Part shown: positions 14,809 through 63,114 of the stretch, in pieces | Numbering within the stretch: position 1 is the first letter of the stretch | Layout: each line of letters starts with the position of its first letter | DNA from: Nageia nagi | Taxonomy: Eukaryota > Plantae > Pinophyta | Direction of reading: 5' to 3' | DNA: 64,000 nt | Assembly: GCA_050084985.1 (NCBI GenBank) | Contig: JBITNC010000001.1 | Coordinates: 67,146,001 to 67,210,000, forward strand | Position numbers and translations under genes: made by a program | The notes under the pieces: generated by a model | Told to the model about the DNA's origin: nothing | The model's database searches: none | The model's input: the letters and a program-made list of their open reading frames with translations, nothing else

Positions 14809-14809
14809 T

Positions 14810-19180: not shown

Positions 19181-19184
19181 TGGA

Positions 19185-22100: not shown

Positions 22101-22510
22101 AGGGAGAAGTCCATAATTACATTCCCCTTGTGTCCCGTAGGACTCTCTTATCGTATTCACATTTTTGGGCTACCTCATAGCACAAGTCAGGAAAAAGCAT
22201 CGCGAATGGCATCATATGGCATTAAACATTCCACAAGTGTGGATAATTCTTTGATAAGTCCTCTTTAGTGATGGAGCAGTGGAGGCTAAAGTCTAGATGG
22301 GGTCCAAGTTTCCCCAAATTTGTATCACCAACAAAGATGTATCTCTCCTTACATTTGGCTTCAGGGAGCTCTAGTCTTTCTCTCTTTGAAACTCAATCAG
22401 ACTTTCTTTCGAAAGCCGGGTCATATGGTTCTTACTTACATGTCTCTCAAACAACTATCCTTGAGCCTTCTTAAATCTTGATGGAGGTGCTCTAATCTTG
22501 GAAGCCATGC
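19185..22510 (-). pseudogene. Accessory ORF, copy C (close paralogue of B, with an internal deletion near 21950)
   Basis: MDFSLDGIEAAFCW, RRFYMNSYLVYLLLHGK, WWVYPKW, RNYDPRG and MEQEGFEAKNEVKTLK..LKKQSSFHEG match copy B. Confidence 0.8.
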
Positions 22511-29733: not shown

Positions 29734-30800
29734 TGTAATCTCCCCAATTTCGGACATCTTGACATCATCCTTCAAGCCTATTCATTGTGATATTTAGTAC
29801 TTGTATTATGAGTATTTTATTTGTCAAATTATGTAGTGTCCCCAACTTTGAGAAACCTTGTTGAAGGCCTAACATTCGTCACAAGTCCAGGATTGTTGAT
29901 TTGTCTTTTGGAATGGATGGAGAATCTTCTGGAAATTGTTTTGACAAGTAACACGACATTCTTTTATCAAGAAATGAGGGAGATATTGCATTTTGAAGTT
30001 CACCAGCTGAGCTAATCTCCGAACATAGCACGCGCCGAAATCGGCCAGGGAAAGTTAGCTAGAAGAAAGATATTTTATTTCAAGGTCGGCCAAGATCATA
30101 ATTATTGGTTTTTTCAAGGTTTAGTCACCTATATAAAGAAGATTAGAAAATCACTTGAAGACATCATCTTGTGCATTCGATCTTTGATCATTCAAAGCTT
30201 AGGGATGCTTCCCTTCTCTACCTTCTAGGGCTTAGGGCTACTCCCTAGCCTAAAAGTGGCTCATCTACACTTCTTGATAGCTTAAATTCGCTATTCTTGC
30301 CATTTGGGAGCTTACGCCAACCATTGGGAACTATTTGGAGACTTGCGCCTATCTTGACAACTACCTTGAGACTTGTGCCAGCATTGAGGAGTCTAGTTTG
30401 AGCATTCTTGAGTTTTGGGCTTTGCCCTAGAGCTTTTTACAGGCTTGTTATTGCCCTATATTTATTCTTGGTTCATTATTAATGATATTAGCTTTCATAT
30501 TGCATCTCGAATGTGAATGAATGTTTCTACATATTTTCTACCTTCTTTGTTTATGGGAATGTATGCGAGTTGAGTACTTTTGGAGCTATATTTTTGTTAT
30601 GTTACAAATATGATTTGTTTCCTAGTTTTGATCATATTCACATGTTATGAACGCTTTATATCAGTTTTGATTATTGTTGTTACATATCTATTTGAGGACA
30701 TGATTTGGATATTTTATGAGCATGTTTATTGATGCCCTAGTTTGTGGATTAAGTGTGGAATTGAATGCTAAATTAGATAAACCAAGAAAGGTACATTACA
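29734..30800 (+). repeat. 3' LTR of a chromovirus-type element, preceded by PPT and pol-tail remnant
   Basis: LELLEGK*FEEEG tail, PPT GAGGAGGAAGGA, then TGTAATCTCC. TATA-like CTATATAAAG near 30129. Likely end GGTACATTACA at 30800 (end ambiguous). Confidence 0.6.
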
Positions 30801-33880: not shown

Positions 33881-35193
33881 ACTGGTATTGAAAAAATTGC
33901 AAAGATGTACCTTTCTAGGGTTTATCCTAAATTGCAAAGATGTAATGTACCTTTCTAGGGTATTGAAAAAATTGCAAAGATGTAATATTGGTCTTATTCT
34001 GGACTTGCGCCGGGAATGAATATACTCCTAACTTGTGATTTTTTCTCTCTCTTGAGGACTTCATGCTAATGGAGAAGACCATCCAAGGCTGGCACAAGTT
34101 TTGAAGAGGTCATGGAGCTTGTTTTGACGAGGACTTGCACTCAAGAAGAGGAGAAAAGCTTGGTTGATGCATTCACTATCAAGCCGAGTAGTAAATAACA
34201 AATATGCTCAAATCACTACTAGGCGAGAGCAAGGAGCTGTAGGGTCTTTATGGAAGACTCGATGGAAAGGGACAAAGATGGGGTGAGGGCGTGAATGCAT
34301 AAACCTAACCAAATGATATAAAGATAAGCTATAACCTCATAATGTATCCACTTGCGTGCAAATTATGCAGAGAAGGATCAGACTCTTTCACACGAAAGAT
34401 ACATATGCAAACCAAAGAAACGGACCATTCACATATGTACAATCGCACAAATGATATCTCACAATACAACTTTGTGATTTTATTCCTCTAATCAAACACA
34501 TTCAAAATGATATTCAATAACAAAATATGCACAAAACCCCTCTTTATAGCAATCTTCTATGCAATGGAATGTGAATCTCATAATATGCAAAGGCTTAAAA
34601 TGATCATGCACATGGACTCCATAGCCTCTAAAATATGCAAGAACTCCAATATATGATGCTTTCATTACGTGCAAAAGTCCCAGGCAAAATAGTACAAAAT
34701 ATGTGCATAAACTCATGTCAAAAATTCCTTATGCAAAAGCCTTGTGTTCCAAATTCCGCTTCTAAATGGCCCGAAAGCGGTATAAATAGGCCATTAGAAG
34801 TAATGCCCTAAAGGCATCAAATCTAATATGGTGTGCACACACGCAACACACATACCAATACAACATCAAATATCATCACGCAAAACTATATAAGTGGCAT
34901 CTAAAGCTGACAAACTATAAATGCCACAGCCACAATGCATTTACTCTACATCTAATCTATCCAACAGAAAATCAGATATGCAATAAATAGACTCAAAAGG
35001 TCTGACATTTAAACCGGCAAGAGTAAAACCTCATCCCTGCACCGGTTAAAGTCATAAATGATTCTAACATATTTGATTAGGTAGGAGCAAAACCTCATTC
35101 CTACACCACTCAAATCATAAAAAAGTCTGACACAACCAACATGTATGCATTAAACATGAAAACAGAATACCACAAATGGGATTTGCGGGTGAA

Positions 35194-37098
35194 TTAGATT
35201 TCGGTCAAATCTGATTCGACACGGACGAAGTTCCACTCCTCACTGGTGAGACCGTAGGACTCAATGGTCTCCTCCAAGAATGCCACGGTCTTCTGCATGC
35301 CCATAGAAATCATGCCAACAGTGCTGCCATTCAGCCGGAAGTAGCCTTCAATCTTTTTGATCGTGGCTTGCATCTGGTACCTCCAGATGACCATCCGCCT
35401 CTCATGCAAAATAGGATGTCTGCCTTTAGCAAATTGAGATCCTCAACCTCAAGATGCTCCTAGATCAAATTTTGAGCCTCCGCCAATACCGCTTCCTTCT
35501 TCCTGACGTTATTGTTTCCCCCTGGAACTTGAGTTGATAAAGATACTCGCTCATTTGCTCCTCTACTTCCTTTCGCAAAGGGATCCTCATCTTAAGGACA
35601 ACATTGCACTTTTCAAGTGCATGGTTCAACCAATCATGGTGATAGGTGAACTCATGGCAATAGATCAATTTCTCGGGGTTATCGACGTATGTATGCTGCA
35701 GGTGGGAAACGTTGGGTAGGTAACCATCCAATGTGCCAACGTGAGTAGCAGTCTGAGTTTTGAGATCTCGGATCTCAACACCTTCAAAATGATAGTCTCC
35801 GTCAACTCGTTTTTGAGTTGTTCCTTCATGAATTCCCACCCCTCATGGAAGGAAGTTTGCTTCTGCAAATGTAAGAGGGTGGTGCTGATTTTTTGGAACT
35901 CTTTTATGATTTTCCAATTGGCCGTGAGTTCTTTTTTCAATCTCTTCACTTCCCTTTTGGCTTTGTAGCCTTCTTGTTCCATGACCGCAGCATTCTGAGT
36001 AACAATGTGCTTCCTAGCCATTAACCCCAGTTTTAGTGGCATCTTAAATGTCTCAATAACACAGTCTTTTGCCCTCTAGGGATGCTTCTTCTTGGAGTAA
36101 CAATGGCTGATGAAGATCTCCTTGCAAGAGGTGGAAACAAAAGTGTCTACCCTCTAAATTTTCTCTCCATCTAAGAGTTCTTCTTCTTCATCCTTTGATT
36201 GCAAGTCTTGCTCTATATCTTCATCATGAGTTGTGCTCATGTTGAGGGCTCTAAGGCAGGCATCCAGGTCAAGATCTGGATGTTCAGTTGTTGGCCGTGG
36301 GGGAAACCTTTGAACCAGCAATCTTCCCTTATCAACTTTCTTGACCTCTTTTGCTAGGGTGGGTGGTAAAACTTTCATCTCTTTGCCTTGATGCTCCTCC
36401 TGCCTTCTCTTCTTTTGTTCTTTTGTCTCACCTTCATCCTCTTCATCTTCTCCATTGCCACCTAAAGATATACCTTTGTTTCGGAGTTGGGGAGATCTGT
36501 CATAACTCCTTTTGGAAGAAGATTTATGTGAAGGAGACTTCTTCCTAGGATCGGCAAGAGAGGACTTAGATACCTCTCTATCGCATTTCTTGCTAAGTAT
36601 CTGGACGTCATCATCATAGGTACCTACATCCACTATCTCACCCTCAAGATGGTTTCCACTTCCATCTCATCAGGTGCTGAAGCACCAATGGTTATGTACT
36701 CTTGCTTAGGCATGTGGGCAATGTTGACATCATCTTCCTCTTCTTCTTCTTCTTCTTCCCTTTCACTACAGCTCTTTTATTCTTCGGTAGAATCTTCAAC
36801 CATACGCTCAGGATTTTCATTAGCTTCTTTATCGAAAGAAGAAGAGGAGGTTTCAGAACTACTAGAACTTGGCTGTAAAGGGGGAACTTTCTCTCTTGAA
36901 CTAGGAGAATGGGTTGATCTGGAAGGAATCCTTTTAGAGGAGGAACAACTACCACAAGCCATATTAATCACATAGTCCAACACATCTAGAGGGAGAGCGT
37001 AATATCCAACATCTTTAAGATCATTTTCTAACACACTACACTTGCTAGTGACCGAAATGGGCTCTCTCGGGGCCTCTTGCCTTTTCCTTCCAACAAGC
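35194..37098 (-). pseudogene. Accessory ORF, copy D (3' half only, truncated at the PDS5-element LTR)
   Basis: DLDLDACLRALNM, KLGLMARKHIVTQNAAVMEQEG and HERRMVIWRYQMQ match copies B and C. Confidence 0.8.
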
Positions 37099-39629
37099 AA
37101 GAGTGTATAAGAAGAATGGATAATAGATAATGCTACCTTCAAATGGTGTTCTCCTCCTCCTTTTATACATGAACTTGAAATTACAAGTTTCATCATGAAG
37201 TGGTTGGCCGACCTAACCCAAAAGAGGGACGTCCAATTCAAAATGCTCGGTTACAAAATTTTTGCACATTAAATGGGATGGCCAACAAATAGGGATATTG
37301 CAAATCATCCTAAATACATCAAAAGACACCTAAATACTCGAAAATATCATTATCTCCTCCTAAAGGAGGGACATCCCACTTGAAGCGGAAAAATTACAAT
37401 AAATTAAGTGAGTGGGACCTGTGCACGCGATTCTAGAAATGTAGTTTTCGAGCCGATCTTCAAAGTGCAATATCTCCTTCATTTCTTGATGAAATCATGT
37501 CGTATAACCTGTCAAAATGTTTGGCAAAAGATGCTCTATGCATTTCAGAAAATGAAGCGACAATCTGTGGCTTCTAACGAAAGTTAGGCCTTCTACAAAG
37601 TTTCTCAAAATTGAGGTCATTACAAACCCACCCTTCTGGAAATTGCTTGTCCTCAAGCAATGCCAACACAGTCTCATCCTACCAAGTTGAAACTAACCAT
37701 GATCCAGAGTCTCAAGTCTTCACAAGAACAATTATGAGTGAAGAGAAAGTCATCAAAATTATTGCTACTATACCCATCATGCCGAGGTAGGATTCAAAAC
37801 CTTGATACCTCGCAATGATGCCAAAGGATGGTATCATAATGGTGAAGAATGAATGCTGCCCCAAGCACACTCTCCCATGGCTGATCTTAGATGGCTTCCA
37901 ATCCTTTTTGCTGGCTGCAATTCCATCATTCATCCTCATGCTATAAAATGAAGAAGTTCTTTGCTTGGCAAGAACACTTGTAATACTGTTTTGGCTCCAA
38001 AATCTGGGTTGCATCAGGTCTGACTTTTCTTCCGTAGCAGTGTTTGTTGGCTGTTCCAACCTCCTCAATGCACCAAAACTCAGATTTCCTTCTATCCTCA
38101 TGGTTGTATAATGAAAAGATTTGGCAAACCCCACAATAACAAGGAATATATTCACACAAAAGGGACTGAAGGAGTGAGATGCATCATCAACACAACCCTG
38201 TATGAAAGCTAACAACTCATGCTCAATAAGCTCTTTCTCCAAAACAAACTCAGTTCTGAATTTCACAAGAAAAACAGTCTCTATCATCATGGAAAACATT
38301 CTTCCACACCTTCTAAAATGAGCAAATTCAGCCTTCATGCAATACTCACCCAAAACTGAAAACCAATGTGATGTAGCAGCCTCTTTCATCAAATAAAATG
38401 CAGCAAACATAAAAAAACTCGGTCCTAATGTGAAACACAGCCTCTAATGGCTCTAAAATTGTCCTAAATGGTACCAAATATGCAGCCCCATTAGGAATGC
38501 AAACCGAGACCCAACAGGTTGTCATTGCTACCAACATTCTACCTGCAGCCTCAAAAGTCTGTGAACAGTCAACCCAAACAACTCCAAAAATCACCTCAAA
38601 AACAGTCCTAATCACTTCCCTGGAAACAGTCCTGAAAACCAGAGAAGTATCAGTCCCAAACGACATTGTTTAGTTCTCAAGTATTCTCCACGAAGCTCTC
38701 CCAATTTCCTTCCATTTTGCTGTTTCAGCCAACATCAAAGGTGCAGCCTAAATTGCACCTTGTCGTAGCAGTCCCAAATTTAAGCCAAGTACTCACATAC
38801 ATCAACTCCTCACTGTGTGCAGCCTCAATTAAGAATGTAACTATGCCAAACAAGAAATCAGCTTCATTTCTTATCATCCTCTTATTACCACCACTCAGCG
38901 ATGCAGTCTTTTCCCCAACCAACTCATGAATGCCAAGATCCTCAAAACATCAGCTTTCATAAAAATCATAATCAATGTCATACCTCATGGAAGTAATCTC
39001 ATGGCTGATCCATGCCTTCAAACAGTGCAAAAGTGACTTCAAGAGAGGGACGTCTCCCTCCAAACACCTCAAAGACCTCACAAGAGTGGGACAAACTTCT
39101 TGGAAGCTCAAAATTGATTTTTGGAAGCTCCCAAATGTCTCACCGAATTTTGCTTCACCTTTTCTTGAAGGGCTCCTTCAACTGAACTCCCATCAATCTT
39201 TTGTATTTCTTCCAGGGAACAGCGATCAAAAATCGGATCTGAAACAACAATCTTTTCTACCTCTCTTTCCACATTTTCTTCATCATGCTCTTCTTTAACA
39301 AACATCTTCTTCTTTGATTGTATCCTCCATATGTGTAGGTGCATATACTTCAAAAGAAACATTTTGGGACTCTAAACATACCTCATGTGGCAAGGCATCA
39401 TCCTCTTTTCCTTCATTGTAAAACTCATGAATGAAATCAGCTCTATGTGATAATGGGTCCTCCAAAGTCAAAACGAGCCATGTATGATGTCTTTTGGATA
39501 GGTCCCTCATCATGCTCGAATGCTGAAGTGTCTTCATTGTGATCTCCTTTTTCTGTTTCATGTGATGGAGTAACATCTTCATGTGAAGCCTTGGCTGTGA
39601 GCTGCTATTCCTCCCTCATCTCCTCATGG

Positions 39630-40316
39630 TCTAAGGAAGGTTTCAGCATCTCTTCACACTATCTAATAACATTGTTAACCAAATCATGTGCAGCAAATGA
39701 AGTAAACAAATCTTGTTTCTAAAAATCCACTAATATAGATAAGAATGGTTGGTAAATGCAATCACTTCCATCTATGATCAAGGTCATAATGTCTCTCATG
39801 GTTAAAATGATATTATGAGCATGTTCTTTTCTAGCTGAAGCAATGAAACGATGGAACATTTTGTAAATCAACTCATCCATATACAAGTCTAACATGATGT
39901 TTCCCATTCCAGTTTTTGTGAATGATTAGATATTGTGACCTTCCTAGCAAAATGTGAATTTGTGATATCTCCCAAGTATTCAAAGCTATCAACCAAGAGT
40001 TGAAGTATTTTCCTCAATGTATTATCATCATAGGGTGCTTTAGGTGTTGTAATTCTCAAGATCTCCCTCAAACAAGAAGTGACCATGATTCTTACCTCTC
40101 CCTTTGTGTGTTTCACCATTTTGGCTTGCCCAAGGATAACACCGCCATAATCATAGCTGTTTGAGAAAGTGACGGATCTACTATGCACAAATATCCTTCT
40201 ATTTCACCTAAGGTGTAGAGGAGATCATTTTTTGGCCGAAATAATAATCCAAGTTTACCTCCAACATTTGTGAGCCTCCCAATCAGCTTGCTTTCACTCA
40301 GTGGTGCTATGGTCAT
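39630..40316 (-). pseudogene. PDS5: Captured, intron-less N-terminal domain of cohesin regulator PDS5 (two frameshifts, stops), followed by an acidic tail to ~38950
   Basis: KHTKGEVRIMVTSCLREILRITTPKAPYDDNTLRKILQLLVDSFEYL and IMLDLYMDELIYKMFHRFIASARKEHAHNIILTMRDIMTLIIDGSDCIYQPFLSIL..CEEMLKPSL are collinear with the plant PDS5 N-terminus as recalled (HSDxDVKVxVASCISEITRITAPDAPYDD..VMLDLECDxLIxEMFxHF..METIMTLVLEESEDI..CAxKLKPYL). Confidence 0.88.
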
Positions 40317-41871
40317 TTAAAACTCAGATCTGATGTGCAAGAAGAATACCCCTCAACATTCGCAAGAATGACCCCCAATCATGCCTTCATCTGCACCAAA
40401 TCTTTCTGAAAGTGGTGATGGCTTTCTAGGGTATCCAAAGTGATCAATATCCCCCAAAATGTGAGCAAATAATTATTCAAAGTTGGAATTCCTCTTCCCT
40501 AGAGCTCTAAACACTTGAAAATGTTAAAATATGAGCCCAAAAATTAGGACGATCTCTCCTCTAAACCCTCCAAATCTGCAACTAGAGTTTCCAAAATGCT
40601 AGATCTGAAAACACAAATCCAATGTGACTCACCAATAGGCTAGCCAGATCATTGGCTATGATACCGCTGTGATGAGCTGAAATAGGATTTTAATGATTTT
40701 AGCCAAATTAATCAATTCTAAAACATGCCTATAACTCCCAGTTATCTTAAGTCAGATCTCAAATAGTACTGAAAGATGCATGCAAATGATCCACAAAATT
40801 ATGCTTTAAGTGTCAATCAACTCAACTCATCCAAACAAACATGCATAACTATCACAAGTGCCAAAAATAAGCCCTAGAAGTGGAAGAACCTCCTTAGGGA
40901 GTAAAAATGCCAAAATCCAAAGCTTGCAAAAATATGAGATAAACGTAAATAGCTTTGAATAACTGAGAGAAATTAGAAATGAGACCAAATGAGCAATTAT
41001 GATGCCCTAGGGTTGGATGCCTCACTAGGCTTGATGAGTACAAGTGAACCAAGGGCTCAACTAGATCTCCAACAGCCTAGGAGAGTGGGACGAACTCTTG
41101 GAATGCTAAAATGAGTTGCAATGCACCAAGATGGCCTTCTAGGGTTGGATACTCCTCCCAATGGCTCCCCGAATGTGAATTTGAAGCTCAGTTTACGTCT
41201 CTGAATGGGAAATCCTCTTCAAAGGCTGCAATAGGATTCCAAGATCCAAGAACAAGCACCAAAATTGGACGATCCTCCAAGAAGCTCTCTCGAATCGGCA
41301 AGTGAAGCACTAAGGCTTCCAAATGTAGATCCGAACTCAGCAAATGTGTAGAGGCTCCAAGGCCTCAACTTAGCAACAATGGTAGTAATGAATCTCAAGG
41401 CTACTTTAAGATCCACCCCAATCCTAATAGGCATTGCACTCTTCAAAAGGAATGGGAATGATTGTTATAGCCACACCCTCCAAGTGTAGAAGAAGAATTG
41501 ATGATAGATAATGATATCCTTAAATGGTGTGCTACTCGTCCTTTTATAGTTGAACTTGAAACTACAAGTTTTATCATGAAGTGGTTGGCCGAACCAACCC
41601 AAAAGATTCTAATAAAAGAAAACAATAAAATACTCCTATTTTATTCAATTTACTCCTAATTATACTTAAAAGAGGGACGTCCAATTTAGGATGTTTAATT
41701 ACAACATTTTTGCACCTTAAATGAAATGGCCGACAAATAGAGATATTACAAATCATCCTAAATACATCAAAACATACCTAAATACTCAAAAATATCATTA
41801 TCTCCTCCTAGAGGAGGAACGTCTCACTCCATGTGTCAAAATTACAATATTACAATAAATTAAGTGAGTGG

Positions 41872-44800
41872 TGTTGGGAAGGAAACCTTTCCTCTTACTC
41901 GGCAATCACCTATACGATCAAGATGGGAAAGCGACCCAGCATGTAAGTGAGAACGCGTTACTGAACTCCGCTTGTAAGGACTGATACCCCAAGGTTTCTA
42001 TCAGAAAGCTCATGTCATTAATACGAGCTCTAAATTTGTAGGCCTTGTTTGGGAATCAACTGATTGGTGTAGTAGAGGTAATAACTGTTAACTCACATTT
42101 TTGTAGGGACTGAGATGTGTTACAATAGTTCGAAAGTTGCCATAAGTTTTAAAAAAAGTGTAAAATAAAGAAAAGAAAAAGTGAGAATGAAGTCGAATAC
42201 TGGCTAGACTTCAAAGAGATAATCACAATGCAGCATTGTCTAAATGTTCTTTCTCTCGGATCGGTTAAGAAATCTTGTTCAATTCAATCAAGTCCTTGAA
42301 ATAAATGACTATTGTCCAATCATTCAAAGATGAGCGAGAAGCAAGAGTAAATGTCGATACTCTATGAACATGACCAATGCAACCAAGTGGACTAAATGTA
42401 GGTGAAGGTGGATAGTTTTGAACAAAAGATCTAGGAAGATGTTTTAAGAGAAAGTCAATACAGAAAACTAAACATTTAACAAGCAAGTGCTGAATTAGCA
42501 ACAATTTGAAACAATTCAACATTTTAGAAAAGTTTGCAACAAGTTCTCCTACAACTCGAGAGTTTTCAAAGAGAAGGCACAAAAATGTTCAAATTACAGA
42601 AATTGCTCTAAAAAGATCAATCCACCACTCCCATAGATGAAAACACACTTTGAATTAGCTTGTAGCCATTTGTATTATGTTTGCAAAAGAGTTTTGCACA
42701 AGTACATCAATTTGCTCCTAAATTGCAAAAATTTTCAATTTTGGAAAAAATTGGAAATTTCTTGGACTACAACATTCTGCCTCAAAATGTGACCCCCTAT
42801 GGTCTATTTATGGACTTTTTTGTCAAAATTTAAGGGTGTTGCCTTAATTCCTAAAAAAGCTTTAAAATGCTAATTTGAATGCTAAATTGAGACACAATAT
42901 CGTTTTAGTGGGAGAATAGTCTCATCCCAATAAAATATGCTAAAAATAAAATATTTACAAAAATTGATGCCCTTTGGCATGTATTTCGAGGCGTTTTGCA
43001 TCACTTTGTCAAAAATTGGAGCTTCAAATCCTCGTTCTGGATCCTTTTGGCAATCTTTTGAGCTCCTTCTTTCTTTGAGTCTAAATTCACCTGTGATGTG
43101 ATCATTGTGACAAATTTTCAAGGGATTCTGATAGAATTTTTGAAAAACTGGATTTTTTTGTTTATTTTCTGAAAAAGATAGGGAGCGTCCGAAATTTGGA
43201 AATTTTTCCAAAAGTGTATTTGAATTTATGGATGAATGGAGGATAGGATTACAAGGTACTTGGTAAGTTTTGAGAAGTTTTGGGGCTTTTAGGAGGTTTT
43301 GGGAAAGATATGAAGTTTTTGGCAATTTTTTCCATTTTCATGTCTATAAATTTTGAAAGATAAAAAAGTGAAATTTCCATAGGAATGAGAAATGCCTCCT
43401 AGGTTCTTGAGCCCTTTAACTTGTTCAAGTTCGAAATTTCCAAAGTTTAAAGGTGCTTGGAATGTCGTTTTACATGCAATGAAGTCAAAATTTTCGAATT
43501 TTGAGCAAAATTTGATGTTCCTCTTCAAGTTAGGCGCTAGTTTACATCTCATTGGATTTCCATACAATTGGAAAACTGCGTCTAGCTTTTTGGTGCCTTT
43601 AAGTTGCTCAAAATTGAAAATTTGAAGTATTAAATGTGTTCAAAATGGCATTTTCCTTGCAAATATGTCAAAAATTTTGATTTTTGTACAAAATCTTCAC
43701 ATTCTACCATGTTTTTCGCCAATTTTCAGGTCTATGGAATCCCAATAGCATGAAAATCTACGCCTTCTTTTTGGAGGGGTTTCCATGGCTTAAAATCAAA
43801 ATTTTCAAGTGTTAAATGTGCTAGAAATGCCTTTTTCTATGCAATGAAAGGGTCCAACATGATTTTTGAGTGAAATTTGTCAAATTTTTCCAACCTAGGC
43901 GCCAAAATTCAGTTCCATGGATCTTCAATCAGCCCCAATCCTGCGACTAGATATTTGTGCCCCAAAACTTGCTCAAAATTGAAAATTTGCAAGTTTAAAT
44001 ATGCTTGAAATGGGGTCTTTCATCCATTTATGCCTTCAAATTTGGTTTTTGATCAAAAATCTATCTCCCTCCTTGACTTAGGCGCCAAAATTCACTTGAT
44101 TGAAATTCCATTGGCATGAAAACATGCGCCTAACCTTTTGGGGCATTTCCCTTGTTCAAAAATGAAATTTTGTAAACCTAAAGTGCCTTGGAATGCCCCC
44201 TTCCTTGCTCTCAAACCTTCAAACTTGAGTTTTACTAAAAATTTATCTTTTTCCTCATGCTAGGTGCCAAAATTCATCCCATTGGATTTCCATAGCCTTG
44301 CAAACCTGCACCTAGCATTTTGGGCCTCAAAACTTGCTCAAAATTGATTTTTCCAAGACCTAAATGTATTCAAAATGCCAAATTTCACTTAATAGACACC
44401 TCAAACTTGATTTTTGACCAAATTTTGTCAAATTTTTCATTTTACACACCATTTTTCACTTCATTGGATTTCCATAGCTCCCCAAACTTGCACCTAGCCT
44501 TTAGAATGCTCAAAAGTGCTCAAAATCAAAAATTTTGAGTATTAAATGTGCTTGAAATGGTCTCTTCCTTGTTCCCAAGCATCTAAAGATTCTTTTTTTT
44601 AGCAAAAAACACTTCATCTTGTCAATCTAGGCGCCAAAATTCATCCCATTGGATTTGGAATCATTTGGAAACTTGCACCTAGGAATTTGGGGGTCTAAAC
44701 TTGTTCAAACTCGAAAAAATGAAGACCTAAAGTGCCTTGAAATCACCTCTTCCATCCATCTATGCATTCACATTTGAATTTCAATGCATTTCCACTTTTC

Positions 44801-46097
44801 CTCCACAATCTAGGCGTCAAAAATCATCTCTATGGTTTTTCCATAGGCTTGAAAAATTGCACTTAGGATTTGACTGCCTTAGACTTGGTCAAAATCGAAA
44901 ATTTCAAGTCTTAATTGTGATAGAATTCATTTTATCTCTCCAATGAAGCTCTTGGACTTGAAATCCGACACCATTTACATTTAACCATGAGAAACATGCA
45001 CCATTTTCCCTCATTTGGGTCTTCAATCCCTTGGGAAAAGGTGCCTGGAGCTAGGGGTACTCAAACTTGCATTTCCGGGCCATCCCGGATTCAATCTATG
45101 CATTTCCAGCCATTTCCGACGTTTTCGAGCTCAAACTCGACCAAAATGCCACTTTCAGCATCTTTGAACTCAATCTATGCATTTTCAATGATTTTCGAGC
45201 TCAAACAATGCAAAAATGACCATTTTCGCCTTTCTAAGCTAAAGCTTGTCATTTTCCATCATTTTTGGCACTTTCGAGCTTAAAGTATCCATTTCTGCCC
45301 ATTTCAAGTATTTTTGGGCCTTATGTGTGAAAAAAATCATTTTTTATCATTTTGAGCTCAACTTTGCATTTTTGACCATTTCCGAACTTTTTGGGCTTAA
45401 ACGGTTGCAAAAACACACATCTTTACTGTACTAACCACTTCCAGACTCAAAATCGACCAAGATAATTCTTTTCATGATAATGACCATTTTTGAGCTTTTC
45501 GGGCTCATACTTGACAAAAACGCTTTTTTTGTCATCTTAGCTGCATCCACTGCTCTCGAACTTGAACTCTACAAAAACACTCATTTTCGTCACATTCGAC
45601 ACTTGTGAGCTTAAAACTCTGAAGAAACGACCATATCTCCACTACCTGCAATCTAGACCAAAACTCCATGCTCTGACATTCTCTCTCAGATCTTGGCCCC
45701 TTGTTTGCAAAATTCATGACTGGATACTCTGATACTCTTCAGGGCCTTCATCGAAAGATCTTCTTGAATCGCTCCCTAATATCATGTTTGCACTCTTCAG
45801 AATGAACTATCCATCGCCCAAAGCCAATATCAAGGCAATGCTCCTCATTGCCTTTGCAAAAATAAGGTCCCTAAAACCTTGTATTAAGGGGTGTATTGTG
45901 CAGACACAACAAGTGGGACATACGCGCACAATTGTAGAAATTTGGCTCCGAAGTTGAACTTCAAAGTGCAATATTGCACTCTTCAAAATGAACTATCTGT
46001 CGCCCAAAGCCAATATCAAGGCAATCCTCCTCATTGCCTTTGCAAAAATAGGGTCCCCAAAATCTTGTATTTTGGGGTGTGTTGTGCAAGCACAACA
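41872..46097. mobile_element. Large solo LTR (~4.0 kb, probably minus strand, Ogre/Tat/Athila-size) inserted in the 5' LTR of the PDS5 element
   Basis: Ends TGTTG...CAACA. TSD AGTGG at 41867-41871 and 45912-45916, repeated at 46098-46102 by a later tandem duplication. The host LTR resumes exactly after it; no coding domains inside. Confidence 0.82.
43350..44990. repeat. Degenerate ~183-bp tandem satellite, about 9 units, inside the solo LTR
   Basis: Anchor AGGCGCCAAAATTCATCCCATTGGATTTCC or variants recur near 43532, 43715, 43898, 44080, 44262, 44445, 44629 and 44812. Confidence 0.85.
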
Positions 46098-46160
46098 AGT
46101 GGGACCTGTGCGCACGATTATAGAAATTTGGCTTCGGAGTTGAACTTCAAAGTGCAATAT
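45789..46160 (+). repeat. 186-bp tandem duplication spanning the solo-LTR/host junction
   Basis: TTGCACTCTTCA..GCCCAAAGCCAATATCAAGGCAAT..CACAACAAGTGGGAC..AAAGTGCAATA occurs twice; LTR ends at 45911 and 46097. Confidence 0.9.
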
Positions 46161-46479
46161 CTCCTTCGTTTCCTAATGAAACCATGTCGCGTAACCTATC
46201 AAAATGTTTTGCAGAAGATGCTCTATCCATCTCAAAAAATGAATCGGCAATTTGTGTCTTGTGACAAAAGTTATGCCTTCTACAAGGTTTCTCAAAATTG
46301 GGTCATTATAGTACATGTGAAACTAGTTCTCACACAACCCCCTTTGGATCAGAATCGAGCTCTGGTGTAGATCAACCATGATGATGATGTTTTTATCCCT
46401 AAGGAATTCGGCCATCTCATGATGTTGTGCAATTTCATGTATTTAAGGAAGGGATGCCTAGTTGGAAAATTATCACTTC

Positions 46480-56122: not shown

Positions 56123-56929
56123 TGAAATGACACCATTTGTGAGATTTCTGTTTGTACATAGGTGTGGAGTGGTGTGTGGTGTGAATTTTGTGATTTTTGG
56201 TTAAGTGTGGTTTTTATTAGCAAAAAAATAAAACAAAAGAAGAAAATAATAAAAGAAACGGGGAATAATGATGATTAAGAGGGTTATTAGTGTGTTTAAT
56301 GAAAAGTGTCACCCTCAACAAAGAAATAGAAAATTGCCTATAAAAGGAGGAGATGGACATTCATTTAGGACATCTTTGAATATCTGAAATTATTATTCTC
56401 TCATTGTATTTGGTTGCATAAGCTGCTACAAACCCTCATGCAGACAAAAACCCCAGGATATTAGCTTAGAGGATGAAAACCCTCTTGACCAAGAAACCTA
56501 GGACGAAAACCCTAGAGTTTCCTTTTGAGGTAAATCCATCTATGGTTTACAATTGCACTTATTGCTTCAGATCTTGGTGAGCTCCCAGATTTCTATTCAC
56601 CCATTGTAGGGCTTAGCACAAGGTTTTCCCATAATTGATCGGATTGGAGACTCAAGGACTCCCAAATCAACCCTGAAGGAGGGACATTGGCTGTGTTATA
56701 CATCATATCTGTCATAGGAGAGAGCCATTGCATTACTGAGCTCTGTTTCATCATTTTCAGACAGTTTTGAGGCCATTGGAGAGCCACTGAGGACGTTGGC
56801 TGTGTTATACAATTTTTTCAGTTGTTTAGATGCCCTAAATTGGAAATTTTGTTTCAGATTTGATATATTGATATAACTCTGAGTTGTGGCATACAATAAT
56901 CATTCTTTGTGTCTAAGTAGGACATTACA
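56123..56929 (+). repeat. 5' LTR of chromovirus (about 500 bp shorter than the 3' LTR)
   Basis: Aligns by eye to 61814-63114; ends GTGTCTAAGTAGGACATTACA just before the PBS; TATA-like CTATAAAAGG near 56338. Confidence 0.93.
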
Positions 56930-56930
56930 A

Positions 56931-56942
56931 TGGTATCAAAGC
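56931..56942 (+). promoter_or_regulatory. Primer-binding site, tRNA-iMet type
   Basis: TGGTATCAAAGC, one mismatch to TGGTATCAGAGC, 1 nt after the 5' LTR. Confidence 0.92.
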
Positions 56943-57489
56943 TAAGATATTGTCAACCTGTGAGGAGACATAGCAATATTTTATAAAATCCAGCAATTTT
57001 CAAAGGGTTTTCTCATCTTCTACGAATCAAATACCCCCCATTCACACATACTATCTCAGAGGTAGAAGAAGACTTTAGTTAAAACCTACTTGGGAGGAAG
57101 ATCTAGAACAAGCTGCACTTAAGGAAGAAGCTCTAGCAGAAACGGAGGGAAGAAATGAATCTAATGGCGAAAAAGATTTTGCCACAATGTTAGATTTGCT
57201 AAGGCAAGTAGCAATAAACACAAATTCTCTTGCAGCAAGTTTTAAGGTGAGATGGCACATAGAGAAACTACACATGATCATGAGAGTGCAAATTCACTGA
57301 GGTATTCTCATTCGCCTTTGCAAAAGCCAATAAAGCCTATGTTTGTGTCACAACAAGAAGAAATGGGATATGAATATGATTTGGAAGCCCTATTTGGTGA
57401 ATACATGCAAAAATCAAAAGTTTTCAGAAATGCAATAAATTTCCAAAGTTAGTGAAAGAAAGTGAAAAGTACAAGGTAGCAAAAGAAAG

Positions 57490-58225
57490 AAAAGAAGTTG
57501 CAACAAAAATTGCAAGTACCCACATTTAATGGGAGTGATGGACTTTCAGCTAGGGGTTGATTACAAAAATTACAAACTTACTTCTCTCTTGATCCTATGC
57601 CTAAGTTAGATGCAATTTAGCTTGCTACATTACATTTAGAAGGCATAGCATATGATTGGTGGCGACATGGTCTAGTCATTCAAAGCCATAGATACATTAT
57701 TACCTTTGATGAGTTTAGTCAAAGGCTTTTGGACAAATTTGAAAAGAAGGAAGGATGATGAAGAATATTTTAAGGAATTGGCAACTCTTCGGCAAATAGG
57801 TTCATTGGCATCTTATGTGAAGGAATTTGAAAGAATCTCAGCTTATTGTGCAAAATGTGTCACCTAGGAGGATGAAATTCCTCTTCATGGATGGACTAAT
57901 GGAGCCCTTACGTGGATTAGTCAAATCTTTTGAGCCTCTTCCACTCCAAGAGGAAATCAAAAAAGCTTTGCTACTTGAACATACACTACCTTCTTCAAAA
58001 TCTAGATGGTCAACAAAGAAGTAAAGGTATGGGGAGTCATCCAAGCCATTGAATAAAAACAAAAATTCAAAAAAGGGGCCAACGTTCCAACCCTCTAGGC
58101 CTATAGCTCCAACACCCAACACCAAGAAGATGGATGAAGCTACTAGAAATAAGTTGCGATGGAAAACATTATGTTTCTCATGCAAAAAGCCATGGGAACC
58201 CGGTCATAGATGCTTGGGAAAATGA
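57490..58225 (+). pseudogene. gag: Gag (capsid and zinc-knuckle remnant) of chromovirus
   Basis: Translates with stops/frameshifts to VPTFNGSDG..LQKLQTYF..ATLHLEGIAYDWW, then FMDGLMEPLRGLVK and LCFSCKKPWEPGHRC. Confidence 0.85.
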
Positions 58226-58339
58226 GAGATTCATTATATTGAGGGCATTTCAGAAAGTGAGAGGGAATCCAAATCTTCTGAAGATGGTAGAGAAGAAGAG
58301 CCCAATGTTGAGAAGAAAAATAGAGAAACATCTCATGAG

Positions 58340-58900
58340 TTGCCTTTTAATAGTAGTGCCTTACCAACTTTACATAGTGTACCTCAATTTTTCACTATTA
58401 CAGTTTTTGGCAAAGTCTTGGATGAGGATGTGGTGGTGTTAATTGATGGTGGAGCTACCCACAATTTTATAGATGAAAGTTTTGTGCAGAAAAATAAAAT
58501 TAAGACAACCAACTTTGCAGGGTTTAATGTTACTATGGGAAGAGGAGAAACTTCACTTTGCACCAAAATGGTGAAGCAACTTGAGGTAGTGATTGATGAG
58601 TACAAATGCATTCATGATTTTTATGCTTTTCCAATGGGAGGTACCTTTGTTCATAATAACAAAGAATATTGTTCGTACATTATTATTCCAGTTTCTCGAA
58701 TTCAAGGAAGATTGGAATGATTGGACGAGAGAAATGTATGTCATATGCGATAGTGCTTGGAGGATAATCGTTTTATGATTTGGATGATGTGACATCCAAC
58801 TATAAGAAGTCCAAATTAAAATTTCAGTATGAAGGATGTGAGATAGAGTTGAAAGGCATCAAGGATATGGAGATACATGGTGTTTCAGCCAAGAGAATGG
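58340..58900 (+). pseudogene. Aspartic protease region of chromovirus, interrupted by an insertion
   Basis: VVVLIDGGATHNFID catalytic motif; FYAFPMGG ... IVLG ... FYDLDDV flank the insert. Confidence 0.88.
58641..58751 (+). other. ycf1: Plastid-derived fragment (NUPT) of ycf1 inside the protease region
   Basis: Translates [36 protein letters not shown], matching the conserved Ycf1 block recalled as PSLIIAKNIGRxLLFQxPEWxEDxxEWxREMHVKC. The retro reading frame resumes on both sides. Confidence 0.8.
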
Positions 58901-59122
58901 AAAGGGTTCTCAAGAAGGGTGACTATGAATGTATCCTCTATACTTTCATGATCAAGGGGATACCTAATTCCACTCCAAGCAAAAAGGTAACATATCATTG
59001 ACAAATTCAAGAAATTTTGAGACAACATAGTGTTGTTTTTGATGATATGCCAAAGGGTCTTCCACCACATAGAGTCTTTGAGCATGTCATAGAGTTAGTT
59101 AGAAGAAGGAACAAAGCCCATT

Positions 59123-61790
59123 ATGATTACACCATATAGACACCCACGTGCATACAAAGATGAAATAGAAAGGACAATAAAAGAGTTGCTTGCAATGGAG
59201 CACATACGTCCAAGCAATAGTCCTTTTGCATCTTCGGTAGTTTTGGTGAAAAAGAAACATGGAACTCTACGCATGTGTATAGACTATAGAGTTCTAAACA
59301 AAAGGACCATCAAAAACAGGTATCCCATCCCAAGAGTGGATGAGTTAATTGATGAATTACATGGTGCAAAATACTTTTCAAAAATTGACTTAATATCAGG
59401 ATATCATCAAATCAGAATGAGAGAAGAAAACATTGCACAAACAGCATTTAGATGTCACTTTGGGCATTTTGAATTTTTAGTCATGCCTTTTGGTTTGACT
59501 AATGCACCAGCCACTTTTCAAGCAGCTATGAATCAGATTTTTAGAGATCATTTGAGGGTGTTTGTATTGGTAATTTTTTATGACACACTTGTTTATAGCA
59601 GTAGTTGGAATCAGCCTTTAGAACACTTTAATATTGTGCTAGAAATATTAGAAAAACAGAAATTTTATGCTAAAGAATCCAAGTGTGGATTTGGGTTAAC
59701 AGAAATTCTATATTTGGGACATATAATCAGCCACAATGAAGTACATGTTGACCCAAATAAACTTGCAGCAGTCCAACAATGGCCGACTCCAACTACATAG
59801 ACATAATTGAGGGATTCTTGGGTTTGTGTAGTTACTATAGGAGATTCATAAAAGGTTTCTCCAAACTTTCAGCACCTTTGACAGAATTAACAAAGAAAGA
59901 GGCCTTTATTTGGAGCAAAGATGCCCAAGAAACATTTGAGAGGTTGAAAAAGTAATGTCCTCTAGTCCTACTCTTGCAATTCCAGATTTTTCCTTACCTT
60001 TTCTAGTAGAATGTGATGCATCCGAAATTGGTATAGAGGTTCTTCTAATGCAAAAGGGGCAGCCAATTGCATATGAAAGTAGAAAACTTAGCCCACTTGA
60101 GAGGACATATAGTATATATGACAAAGAAATGCTTGTCATAATGCATGCCTTATCAAAATTTAAGCAATATCTTGTGTTTGGCAAGTTTATTGTCAAAACT
60201 GATCATAATAGTTTGAAATATTTCTTTGGCCAAAAAGATTTAAATGATAGGCAGCAAAAGTGGGTCACAAAACTACAAGCCTATGATTTTGAGATTGAGT
60301 TCAAGAAAGGTAAACATAATACAGCAGCAGATGCACTTTCTAGGACTCCATCATTCCACTCTTTTTTAGTTATTAATGTTGATTGGAAAGCAAAATTGAT
60401 GGCAAAATATGTAAAGAATGATTTTGCTTCAAAATTAGTTGATGGGAAAATCGTTGATACAAATTTCAGAGTTAAGGAGGGGCTAATTTTTTATAAGAAC
60501 AGAATTTATCTTGTGCCAGAATCCAAATTGAAGAACAAACTTATAACAGCAATGCATGATGCACCATTTGTGGGATATCCAAGGTTCTACAAAACATACA
60601 GGTTAATAAGGGAGAGGTTTTCATGGAAAGGATTGAAGGATGATGTGTTAAGACATGTTAGAGAATGTCCAACATGTCAAGAAAACAAAACAGAAAATTC
60701 ACTAACTGCAGGTTTACTTCAGCCCTTACCTAGTCCAAATGGTAAGTGGGAGAGCATATCTATGGATTTTATAACAAGATTGCCAAATGTCCAGGGCAAG
60801 AATTGTATATATATGTTGTTGTGGACAGGTTAACGAAATATGGACATTTTTATGTCATTTCAGCTTCTCATACAACCATACAAGTGGTTGAATTATTCTT
60901 CAAGGAGGTCTTTAGGTTGCATAGATTACCTAAGACTATTATTAGTGACAAAGAACCCAAGTTTATGAGTGCATTTTGGCAAGAGATTTTCAGACTTAGT
61001 GGCACTCAATTAACCCCAAGTACTGTCTATCACCCTCAAATTGATGGCCAAACTGAAATAGTCAATAAATTTAGAAAGGCACTTAAGAAACTACATTTCA
61101 AGATAGCAATGTTCTTGGATTAAATGGTTATATATGGCAAAACTTTGTTACAACACATCTTATCATTTGTCCATTAAAATGACTCCTTTCATGGCACTTT
61201 ATGGATATGATGCTCCAAACATTGTTGATGTCTTAATTTATAACAGCAGGGTTGCAAAGGCACATGACTTCATCAAAGAACATCAAGACATCTTAAAAGT
61301 CCTAAAAGATAATATACAAACTGCCCAAAAATCAGCAGAAAAGATATGCAAACCAGCAAAGAGTTGAAAGGCATTTTGAAGTGGGAGACATGGTATATTT
61401 AAGACTTCAGCCCTACAAACAGTCTACATTGAAAAGAAGTGGCAGTGAAAAACCAAGGTTTTATGGATCTTATAAAATGCTATGCAGAATTGGAGAAGTA
61501 GCATATGAATTGGAGCTTCCTTCTCATAGCAAAATCCATAATGTCTTCCATGTTTCTTTTGCTTGAAGAAGGCACTTGGGCAGTATGTAATTCCTTCACA
61601 AGAATTGCCTCCACTTGATGATGAAGGTAAAATATTTTAGAAGCTGAATCAATTCTTGAGATGAGGGAAAAGAAGTTGAGGAATAGAGTCATCCGTGAGT
61701 GTTTGGTCAAGTGGAAGGGCTTCCATTGGAGGATTCTACTTGGGAAGGACCTCAAATCCTTTCTCACCCAGTTCTTAATCGCTTGGGGTC
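59123..61790 (+). pseudogene. pol: Pol of chromovirus: RT, RNase H, integrase, chromodomain
   Basis: RT: LRMCIDYRVLN, YFSKIDLISGYHQIR, VMPFGLTNAPATFQ, YADD box decayed to FYDT. RH: VECDASEIGI, KTDHNSLKY. INT: HVRECPTCQ, WESISMDFIT, VVVDRLTKYGHF, YHPQIDGQTE. GPY/F: FYGSYK. Chromodomain about 61637-61770 (EAESILEMR...ECLVKWKG...EDSTWE). Confidence 0.95.
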
Positions 61791-61799
61791 AAGCAATTT

Positions 61800-61810
61800 G
61801 AGAGGGGAGG
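61800..61810 (+). promoter_or_regulatory. Polypurine tract
   Basis: GAGAGGGGAGG immediately upstream of the 3' LTR. Confidence 0.88.
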
Positions 61811-61813
61811 TAT

Positions 61814-63114
61814 TGTAATGACCCCATTTTTGAGATTTCTACTTGTACATAGGTGTGGAGTGGTGTCACGGTGTGTGGTGTGAATTTTGTGATTTTTGGT
61901 TTAAGTGTGGTCTTTATTAGCTTAAAAAAACAACAAAAAATAATAATAATAAAAGAAAAGGGGATTAATGATGATTAAGAGGGTCATTAGTGTGTTTAAT
62001 GAATAAGTGTCACCCTCAACAAAGAAATAGAAAATTGCTTATAAAAGAAGGAGATGGACATTCATTTGGGACATCTTTGAATATCTGAAATTATTATTCT
62101 CTCATTGTATTTGGCTGCATTAGCTGACTACAAACCCTCTTGCAAACAAAAACCCCAGGAGATTGGCTTAGAGGACAAAACCCTCTTGACCAAGAAACCT
62201 AGGATGAAAACCCTAGAGTTTCCTTTGAGATAAATCCATCTAGAGTTTACAATTGTACTTATTACTTCAGATCTTAGTGTGCTCCCAGATTTCTATTCAC
62301 CCATTGTAGGGCTTAGCATAAGGTTTTCCCATTATTGATCGATTGGAGGCTCAAAGACTCCCAAAGCAGCATTGAAGGAGAGACGTTGGCTGTGTTATAC
62401 ATCATATCTCTCCTAGGAGAGGGCTGATGCATTACTGATGTCTGTTTCATCATTTTCAGTCAGTTTTGAGGCCATTGGAAAGCCATCAGGGACCTTATAT
62501 CCACTTGGATAGGTTCGTTGCAGCTCTTGAGGCTTGGTTGATCAGTTTCAAGACCAGATTTGCATTTACATGAGTTATCCAGCCTCCTGTCCTATTCCAG
62601 ATCCAAATTGAGGCTTTATTTCATCCTATATCTGCATTTGGAGAGGGACATGGTATTGTTTCAGACCTGTATTTGCCACACTTTACAGATTTTGTGCTTT
62701 ATCAGCAATTCTTATCAGTTTAGAAGGGGACATATCTGCCCATTGAAAAGGGACATTCAGCACCTGAGACTGTTGTTGACTGATTTTGAGGTGAATCACG
62801 CCATATTCAGACCTGATTTGGGCAGATCACATCCAATCCTGATTGGGAAAGGGACATCCAGTCAGATCTGGGCATATCTTGCATTTGTTTTGTCATTTCT
62901 AGTGAGACGTTGAGGTCATAGAGGCAGATTTCTGCCTATATGTTGTTTTCAGTTCATTGGTGATTGAATAACATACAGTTTGGTGTGAAACAATAAATTT
63001 CCTGAGTTGTTTAGATGCCTTAAATTGGAAATTTTATTTCAGATTTGATATATTGATATAACTCTGAGTTTTGGTATGCAATAATCGTTGTTTGTGTCTA
63101 AGTAGGACATTACA
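61814..63114 (+). repeat. 3' LTR of chromovirus
   Basis: Starts TGTAATG after the purine tract; ends GGACATTACA followed by TSD TAAAG. Confidence 0.94.

Follow-up and report, generated by a model that had tools for sequence, protein, structure and literature searches.

The minus strand of a 64,000-nucleotide stretch of Nageia nagi DNA (hereafter the window) carries, between two copies of a long terminal repeat (LTR), a copy, now broken, of the complete short PDS5 domain of the PDS5C class (39623-40316). The arrangement is probably best explained as a dead non-autonomous LTR element, or LTR-bounded unit, with a captured 5' part of a PDS5C mRNA, belonging to an old multi-copy family of such copies.

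The earlier note, made from the letters of the window, had recognised the N-terminal domain of PDS5 and proposed an HMM search; this search matched PF20168 in two pieces, 40203-39892 (E 1.2e-15, 57 bits) and 39925-39722 (E 9e-7, 27.5 bits), both against a cut-off of 27 bits. Alignment to canonical proteins places the beginning of the segment at the PDS5 protein N-terminus, and from there about 230 codons run collinear with canonical PDS5C proteins with no interruption in tblastn, both as the note had it; the collinearity with plant proteins of 800-1000 aa is limited to their first ~240 residues. The copy is dead, as had also been noticed: the block is spread over three frames by two frameshifts, near 40116-40130 and near 39905-39925, and three in-frame stops were found, two in the block (39719-39721 and 39656-39658) and one in the tail that follows it (39605-39607). 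This acidic tail, rich in Glu, Asp and Lys and linker-like, was likewise expected; it extends down to about 39130 (39130-39622, minus strand) with further frame changes, is collinear with protein P0010 to 39557 (E 2e-5), and at 39299-39177 has a marginal match to the tail of the Taxus protein P0016 (E 0.014). When 150 relatives, including the full-length Ginkgo, Welwitschia and Amborella proteins, were compared with the window by tblastn, they matched it only at 39500-40316, so that no Tudor domain was found in the window, nor did Pfam find one on the interior pieces. Against human PDS5B (5HDT, residues 17-198) the family profile gave E 7e-24, and an AF2 model of the family member P0008 is all-helical, with nine helices and a mean pLDDT of only 68; the best Foldseek match was again PDS5B 5HDT, a weak one (E 0.025, TM 0.33). 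Judged from its sequence, the source of the captured segment is the PDS5C class, in which a PDS5 domain of ~230 aa is followed by an acidic linker.

In a representative search, the best matches of the window copy were PDS5-only proteins of 116-290 aa, 51-57% identical to it, and the short proteins nearest to it reach 55-61%, whereas its protein identity with the canonical PDS5C of Ginkgo and Welwitschia is about 40%; the divergence of the cargo from host-type PDS5 is thus much greater than that between the two LTRs (84-86% identical, at the DNA level), in agreement with the earlier note. The tree recovered a Cupressales clade with an SH-aLRT of 99 and a sub-clade containing the window copy with 97-99, and all named members of the clade come from Cryptomeria japonica or Taxus chinensis, across many chromosomes. 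Judged by these nearest relatives, the window would come from a conifer genome of Cupressales type. We compared the window at the DNA level with a distant copy, L002, with which it has only the coding block in common (69.8% over 678 nt). The similarity begins about 4 nt before the L002 ATG, and the flanks show no greater similarity than shuffled sequences do; the leaders of the two copies have no significant similarity (z about 1.9). Differences by codon position were 56/34/57, and for this one DNA pair dN/dS was 0.45 (bootstrap CI 0.29-0.71). A 69-nt island, 75% alike, was observed downstream in L002. Because the clade of short-only proteins is diverged, and because only the coding block is common to L002 with a dN/dS of 0.45, the family appears to be old and once under constraint. 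Past purifying selection on the coding block would imply that the founder, or some of the members, once encoded a working protein; however, a dN/dS below 1 could also stem from selection that acted on the parental genes of the host, ahead of captures that were independent of one another, and not on TE-borne copies. At the level of sequence, then, the window copy is shown to be one member of an old, much-diverged, multi-copy family of PDS5-domain-only copies, which agrees with the old family suggested in the earlier note; carriage of the whole family by this LTR/PBS backbone would be a further, putative step.

These relatives also bear on the idea of an isolated event, unconnected with any family, in which a LINE-type processed pseudogene or a transduction by chance was left in a TE-rich region. 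Such an event would fit the dead state of the copy, and gene capture by TEs is extremely common in conifers (PMC13477047); yet the window copy clusters with at least five further short ORFs (55-61% identity) and is well separated from canonical PDS5C, and its dN/dS against the distant copy also speaks against a single accident. Neither a poly(A) remnant nor a flanking target-site duplication (TSD) was found around the PDS5 block, and the coding strand of 37000-41500 contains no A-rich 15-mer; the LINE-type processed pseudogene was rejected on the absence of both the tail and the TSD. The one-off reading, which the short-ORF relatives and the trees largely refute, is in our judgement very improbable.

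The LTR pair described in the earlier note was recovered as direct repeats on the minus strand. Copy A, the 3' LTR (37102-37624), begins TGTAATGACC, and its homology to the other copy stops at 37102. Copy B, the 5' LTR, is split into a first part at 46098-46313, which begins TGTAC at about 46313 and is 84.5% identical to 37411-37624, and a second part at 41483-41871, which is 86.1% identical to 37102-37410 and whose homology to the 3' LTR stops at ...TACACT; the K2P distance of the pair is 0.164 over 522 nt. On the minus strand both copies start with TGTA, the shared sequence ends ...TACA(CT), and the interior between them, 3.8 kb, lies on the same strand. What splits the 5' LTR is a nested LTR-type insertion of 4.2 kb (41872-46097) with the termini TGTTG...CAACA, missing from the other LTR copy and bounded by its own 5-bp TSD, CCACT, at 46098-46102 and 41867-41871. 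The insertion contains a tandem array of ~183 bp (43369-44918), and its joint is crossed by a duplication of 186 bp (45788-46160). For the element itself, no TSD of 4-6 bp was found, one flank reading ...TTCACA and the opposite one CTCTTG or CTTGCT; a truncated copy of a repeat family, X, adjoins the end of the 3' LTR at 37102, and the flanks are mismatched because this repeat is present on one side only.

The priming sites follow the strand of the ORF. A PPT-like tract, AGAAGGGTGGG (37627-37637, minus strand), short and with one T within, lies 2 nt before the start of the 3' LTR (TGTAATG), where the earlier note had placed a PPT. The PBS of the initiator-tRNA type proposed in the same note was confirmed as a site, CGGTATCATAGCC (40654-40666, minus strand), with two mismatches to iMet, preceded by ...CACAG and followed after ~340 nt by the ATG (40316), but its expected place beside the LTR was not, since the LTR homology (41483/37102) ends 816 bp short of it; the LTR/PBS boundary is therefore ambiguous. 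iMet-like sites at two mismatches number three in the window against 0.95 expected by chance, and by an arithmetic estimate ~0.01 would be expected on the same strand in the 1.2 kb upstream of the ATG. An alternative PBS candidate, TGGAGGGTGTGG (41471-41482, minus strand), begins 2 nt after the TACA at the end of the LTR homology; no tRNA was matched to it, and ARAGORN found no tRNA genes in the window. The segment between the two candidates (40667-41470, minus strand), which has no second copy within the window and no Pfam domain, may have belonged to a longer LTR, as a 3' portion that is missing from the truncated 3' copy; it may otherwise be a long leader or a piece of a different element. 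From the PBS-like site to the ATG, the sequence (40317-40653, minus strand) was read as a leader.

As the earlier note had stated for RT, RNase H and integrase, the interior lacks the domains of an autonomous element: a Pfam search of 20 interior pieces found no gag, protease, RT, RNase H or integrase, and tblastx gave no match between the interior and the window's own Ty3/gypsy element. Since gag and pol domains are absent from the interior, the element would be non-autonomous at best. The supposed remnant of a pol tail found no support. Just upstream of the PPT there is a hydrophobic open frame of 243 codons (37715-38443, minus strand) with a transmembrane-like C-terminal segment, which remained open in none of 20,000 shuffles; it found no relative in Pfam, word-index, PDB or Atlas searches, and its predicted structure has a pLDDT of 41. 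Its presence in the same interior counts against the capture reading.

Part of this evidence can be read in another way. The short PDS5C-like sequences may be a host gene family, paralogues of PDS5C without the Tudor domain that multiplied through duplication, ordinary or assisted by TEs, with the window copy a pseudogene that happens to lie between abundant LTRs and not a cargo. In Cryptomeria japonica two members are RefSeq models (XP_057821645.2 and XP_057843870.2, 'PDS5 homolog C-like'), several divergent family ORFs of 200-282 aa are intact, and no LTR pair was found within 9.2 kb of L002, whose PDS5 ORF is enclosed by 117-bp inverted repeats. The missing TSD and mismatched flanks of the window element would also suit a host family, and so would a third fragment of the same LTR family at 29832-30002, which indicates that this LTR is common. 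However, the two LTR copies point the same way, and their mutual identity (84-86%) exceeds that with the third fragment (78%); next to one LTR there is a PPT-like tract, and after the second there are PBS-like sites, on the strand of the ORF; and the segment is uninterrupted, with no UTR-like conserved flank. On balance we find the host-family explanation rather unlikely, and keep the LTR-bounded capture as the preferred reading. L002 also has an iMet-like site, with three mismatches, 237 nt before its ATG.

As to the function of the family, the earlier note had argued that a truncated PDS5 could be a decoy for cohesin regulators, on the ground that the domain carries the A-P-D/E-A-P docking loop. 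The loop of the window copy reads T-P-K-A-P, with Lys at the acidic position of the canonical motif. We scanned loops taken from 28 proteins of the short clade, one of which (P0012) proved a spurious extraction, and the full motif was kept in 0 of the 27 readable loops; PDAPY or PEAPY was present in 87 of ~115 other matches, including those of Ginkgo, Welwitschia and Amborella. The argument for a decoy thus loses the loop on which it was built.

A stronger version of the idea would make the family an active weapon of the transposon: a Tudor-less N-domain, expressed from the LTR, would titrate proteins that partner PDS5C or cohesin regulators, with weaker RdDM-type silencing or altered chromatin targeting as the result. 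PDS5C/RDM15 is an RdDM factor that binds NRPE3B, a subunit of Pol V; contacts with other proteins are attributed to its N-terminal ARM/HEAT part, and its Tudor domain reads H3K4me1 (PMC8184781; PMC12859917; bioRxiv 10.1101/2025.05.08.652912). Past purifying selection, the conserved hydrophobic core columns of the family alignment, and the first-gene position of the ORF after a PBS-like site would agree with such a role; against it stand the loss of the loop throughout the readable clade, the broken window copy, and the long terminal branches of the family tree, consistent with relaxed constraint. We regard an active weapon as clearly unlikely, and as unlikelier still that a Cupressales family of retroelement-borne, selection-maintained, Tudor-less PDS5C N-domains interferes, in the manner of a decoy or dominant-negative, with PDS5C-dependent RdDM or with the regulation of cohesin. 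The most plausible idea is that the family protein would be a reader-less PDS5C N-domain, predicted to bind PDS5C partners; a decoy function is speculative.

For the preferred reading, a captured PDS5C segment in an LTR-bounded unit, we propose the following history. The interior would contain a copy of the 5' portion of a PDS5C-class mRNA, which begins at the host start codon, takes in the entire HEAT/ARM domain of ~230 aa and reaches into the acidic linker, but lacks the Tudor domain; the 'processed', mRNA-derived nature of the block is what we infer here. A host PDS5C mRNA was probably co-packaged with retroelement RNA and probably joined to it through template switching of the reverse transcriptase, and the chimera would have spread in trans on proteins of autonomous elements, its coding block being under purifying selection during part of the family's history. 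Assuming a substitution rate of 2.2e-9 per site per year, from conifer studies, the window copy would have inserted roughly 40 million years ago. It would afterwards have received the nested insertion, suffered the loss of a flank or of some LTR sequence, and accumulated its frameshifts and stops.

Known systems offer partial parallels. In Bs1 of maize and in LTR elements with transduced gene fragments (PMC13317346), an LTR-bounded, pol-less unit also has an mRNA-derived host coding interior, and the same review gives the template-switch mechanism with Bs1 as its precedent. Bs1 too would have arisen by template switching or transduction and has a host-derived ORF in its internal region; however, it has a gag-like part and pieces of three genes in one chimeric ORF, whereas the window element has a single complete domain from the host ATG and no recognisable gag, in a cargo lineage that appears very old and diversified across conifer families. 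The TE-capture study of Platycladus orientalis (PMC13477047) describes the same phenomenon, in the same host group, and reports gene-fragment capture by TEs as very frequent in gymnosperms; its cases are mostly single fragments, PDS5 is not named and 'cohesin' is absent from its text, whereas the window copy belongs to a family of whole-domain ORFs with a dN/dS signal below 1. The PDS5C class of seed plants (RDM15), described in PMC8184781 and bioRxiv 10.1101/2025.05.08.652912, has the same truncated PDS5 domain of ~230 aa followed by an acidic disordered region, but the canonical proteins have an H3K4me1-reading C-terminal Tudor domain and the A-P-D/E-A-P loop, and the window copy and its clade have neither. 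Like the non-autonomous LARD and TRIM elements, the window element would have been mobilised in trans. VANC of VANDAL21 (cited in PMC13317346) is alike only as a speculative functional analogy, as a TE-borne protein acting against host silencing; unlike the family described here, it is a DNA-transposon protein not derived from a gene of the silencing pathway.

LTR elements of conifers capture genes routinely, so the single dead copy in the window is unremarkable in itself. More interest lies in the family, in which whole-domain, start-codon-to-linker copies of the PDS5C class appear diversified across Cupressaceae and Taxaceae, and several of which carry annotations as PDS5-like genes. In Arabidopsis, transposons undergo RNA-directed DNA methylation, a process in which PDS5C is implicated; if the decoy reading were true, a component of a silencing pathway would have been stolen by the very elements that it helps to silence. 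If intact members are expressed, the family would offer a concrete test of whether a silencing or chromatin factor of the host can be turned against it by transposons, and if they are not, it would be a clear example of a captured fragment inflating a gene family in giga-genome annotations.

Within the LTR-bounded unit on the minus strand (approximately 37102-46313), PDS5 (PF20168) was the sole significant Pfam family among 20 stop-to-stop pieces of the minus-strand interior, matched at 40203-39892 (E 1.2e-15) and at 39925-39722 (E 9e-7), which confirms the identity that the earlier note had assigned to the cargo from the sequence. Gag, protease, RT, RNase H and integrase all went undetected in the scan, and the PDS5 copy gave no match to a Pfam ATG2 domain; the lack of RT, RNase H and integrase had been noticed before. 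Beginning with the ATG at 40316, the PDS5 block follows its relatives collinearly and uninterrupted for about 230 codons; it is spread over three frames, with breaks near 40116-40130 and 39905-39925 and in-frame stops at 39719-39721, 39656-39658 and 39605-39607, so that this copy is indeed disrupted by two frameshifts and by stops. To translate the broken ORF across its breaks, X and nothing else was placed at each of them. An acidic tail with more frame changes follows the block to about 39130; it is collinear with P0010, a protein from our representative search, to 39557, and marginally with the tail of a Taxus protein; no poly(A) remnant was found. A remnant of the end of pol had also been proposed. 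A tblastx comparison of the interior with the Ty3/gypsy element of the window (56123-62485) and with the rest of the window gave no match, and since both this comparison and the Pfam scan were negative for TE domains, the pol remnant is unsupported. The Ty3/gypsy element itself lies on the plus strand; its LTRs, at 56123-56786 and 61814-62485, are 89.8% alike and have no relation to the LTRs of the PDS5 element. Its ORFs for RT, RNase H and integrase are at 59123-60833, and its iMet-like PBS is at 56931-56943.

HMMER, run exhaustively over 1.84 billion representatives, returned 435 matches, the best of which were short proteins of 116-290 aa with 51-57% identity; identity to canonical plant PDS5 was about 40%. 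The long matches, mostly of 600-1200 aa, are proteins of the PDS5C class, whose architecture comprises a PDS5 domain of about 230 aa, a disordered region and a Tudor reader (bioRxiv 10.1101/2025.05.08.652912; PMC8184781). In tblastn searches with all 150 matches the window was touched only at 39500-40316, so that neither a Tudor domain nor additional PDS5 exons showed up in it. The short-family profile matched human PDS5B (5HDT, residues 17-198; E 7e-24); the AF2 model was helical but mediocre, with 5HDT as its best, though weak, structural match. The idea that a truncated PDS5 acts as a decoy for cohesin regulators was founded on a conserved docking loop, and it is this feature that is not conserved. 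The motif A-P-D/E-A-P-Y is present in 87 of about 115 non-short matches, including those of Ginkgo, Welwitschia and Amborella. The loop of the window copy reads T-P-K-A-P-Y, and the full A-P-D/E-A-P motif occurs in none of 27 short-clade proteins, in which the acidic position is often Lys, Gln or a hydrophobic residue (28 loops were extracted by motif scan, and P0012, a spurious one, was excluded).

The short proteins form one clade in a quick tree (SH-aLRT 99), apart from the PDS5C proteins of Ginkgo (924 aa) and Welwitschia (901 aa), from the Amborella-rooted angiosperm PDS5C clade and from the 1600-aa PDS5A/B type. Its named members all come from Cryptomeria japonica, with at least nine proteins on at least seven chromosome-sized records, or Taxus chinensis, with at least eight on several records; the others are from Logan, ENA or JGI contigs. 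The neighbours of the window copy in the tree are P0008, P0010, P0099, P0009 and P0031 (support 97-99). Protein identity is 55-61% inside this group, 35-50% between sub-families and about 40% between the group and Ginkgo or Welwitschia; it is 59-65% between the Taxus proteins P0016/P0006 and Ginkgo, and 70% between Ginkgo and Welwitschia. By these identities, the lineage of the window copy has diverged much faster than host-type PDS5C, and the captured PDS5 lineage is much older than the insertion in the window, as had been proposed. The relatives also suggest a Cupressales-type conifer as the source of the window. In Taxus chinensis, the 845-aa protein P0157 (KAH9293772.1) joins a PDS5 N-domain to about 500 aa of hydrophobic, low-quality read-through and is probably a mis-annotated copy of a similar fragment, not a true PDS5C. 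In the ESM Atlas, Transposase_23 (CACTA TNP2) was found in 21% of the members of one plant PDS5C-like cluster, and in P0092 and P0113, which are single gene models, a PDS5 N-domain is fused with gag/protease/RT or with a zinc knuckle. Such cases may reflect a tie between the PDS5C N-domain and TEs in further plants, or they may be chimeric annotations.

Among related loci, DNA was available only for the one encoding P0008, represented by two JGI metagenome contigs, L001 and L002; a search with a three-sequence alignment returned this locus alone, twice. L002 aligns with the window over 40314-39649 only (69.8%, 678 nt). The alignment opens about 4 nt before the ATG of L002, which stands opposite the third codon of the window copy. 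The upstream 300-600 nt showed no likeness between the two beyond that of shuffled sequence, the leader similarity being not significant (score 53 vs 42 +/- 6 for shuffles), and downstream only one island of 69 nt (75% identity) was shared. The dN/dS between window and L002 was 0.45 (Nei-Gojobori, 178 codons; bootstrap 95% interval 0.29-0.71), and the differences by codon position were 56, 34 and 57. With this ratio and with flanks that are unalike, the PDS5 coding block is a conserved island, and purifying selection acted on part of the path joining the two copies. The signal is compatible either with selection on the TE-borne copies or with selection on host parents prior to separate captures. 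L002 contained no LTR pair within 9.2 kb. The P0008 ORF is enclosed by inverted repeats of 117 bp (L001 1-117 and L002 4570-4688), which share 98% identity and stand about 4.7 kb apart; a second inverted pair is at L002 5449-5540 and 9123-9214, and both contigs terminate at these repeats. The arrangement could represent a carrier of the TIR type or simply two repeats that face each other. The sole hint of an LTR element at L002 is an iMet-like site with three mismatches located 237 nt before the ATG, for which the chance expectation is about 0.03 by simple proportion.

Comparison of the window with itself delimited the LTRs, both on the minus strand: a continuous 3' copy at 37102-37624, and a 5' copy in two parts, 46098-46313 (matching 37411-37624 at 84.5% identity) and 41483-41871 (matching 37102-37410 at 86.1%). 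TGTA opens both copies in the minus-strand reading, and the 3' copy is directly preceded by a polypurine tract, AGAAGGGTGGG, plus 2 nt; the element is on the minus strand, the same as the ORF, because the plus-strand counterpart of these positions is pyrimidine-rich. At 29832-30002, in the opposite orientation, the window has one more piece of this LTR family, its third, which shares 78% identity with the initial 170 bp of each copy. The pooled K2P distance between the copies was 0.164 (522 nt). At a conifer substitution rate of 2.2e-9 per site per year, this distance would correspond to about 37 million years, a date valid only if both LTRs belong to a single insertion. The 5' LTR is split by a nested LTR-type insertion of 4,226 bp (41872-46097), with termini TGTTG...CAACA and a perfect 5-bp duplication, CCACT, on both sides, and the 3' copy is uninterrupted at the matching point. 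This block is a solo LTR or else a small element; an expansion of repeats internal to the LTR was ruled out by the clean 5-bp TSD. A tandem array of about 183-bp units (43369-44918) lies within the insertion, and a 186-bp tandem duplication (45788-46160) spans its joint.

The LTR boundary is less simple. The LTR homology stops at 41483/37102, directly after ...TACA(CT). Beyond this end the 5' copy reads TGGAGGGTGTGG, which looks like the beginning of a PBS, with no tRNA match made (Rfam and ARAGORN gave no match over the window). On the 3' side, the homology gives way at the very next base to an unrelated repeat, family X, present there as a truncated copy. Family X is present at 11525-16155, 17873-22406 and 34171-37101 (about 69% alike, one inverted), its third copy being cut exactly at the LTR homology end; its ORFs of 130-230 aa had no Pfam match, it does not resume past 46313, and the PDS5 element has no TSD at its flanks. 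Three readings fit: a longer LTR whose 3' copy was shortened by a deletion extending into family X, an LTR that ends at TACA with an interior whose PBS and leader come from another element, or a recombinant origin of the PDS5 unit. Each of them needs one rearrangement. The iMet-type PBS-like site on which the earlier anatomy relied (40654-40666, two mismatches) lies 816 bp inward of the LTR homology end; three such sites were observed in the window vs 0.95 expected by chance, and for the 1.2 kb that precede the ATG on the strand concerned, simple proportion gives about 0.01. Of the anatomy proposed, the LTR pair and the polypurine tract stand; the PBS has two candidate positions.

Directly upstream of the polypurine tract, a 243-codon open frame (38443-37715, minus) is far longer than expected by chance (none of 20000 shuffles stays open), is hydrophobic, has a transmembrane-like C-terminus and occupies the position of an env-like ORF. 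It had no relative in Pfam, ESM Atlas (recognition 2050), word-index or PDB sequence searches, no tblastn match in L002 or in the remaining window, and no confident fold in its AF2 model (pLDDT 41).

Capture of gene fragments by TEs is reported to be pervasive and ancient in gymnosperms: a study of Platycladus, in which cohesin is unmentioned, puts the captured fragments at about 400,000 per genome and, for conifers, gives about 480,000 host TEs with about 12,000 genes as their donors (PMC13477047). A review covers template switching as a route of capture by LTR elements, Bs1 as a precedent, and the idea of 'camouflage' (PMC13317346). The window copy is a dead case of this known type of event. 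The earlier observation was real and mostly accurate; its interpretation is right as regards an old captured PDS5 lineage, and wrong or unproven as regards the docking loop, the pol remnant and the function. PDS5C/RDM15, which has an N-terminal ARM repeat and a Tudor domain that reads H3K4me1, binds the Pol V subunit NRPE3B, and a subset of loci depends on it for RdDM (PMC8184781); TEs are de-repressed on loss of PDS5C/E (PMC12859917). Given these roles in RdDM and TE repression, a PDS5C N-domain devoid of its reader would be an attractive candidate for an interference factor.
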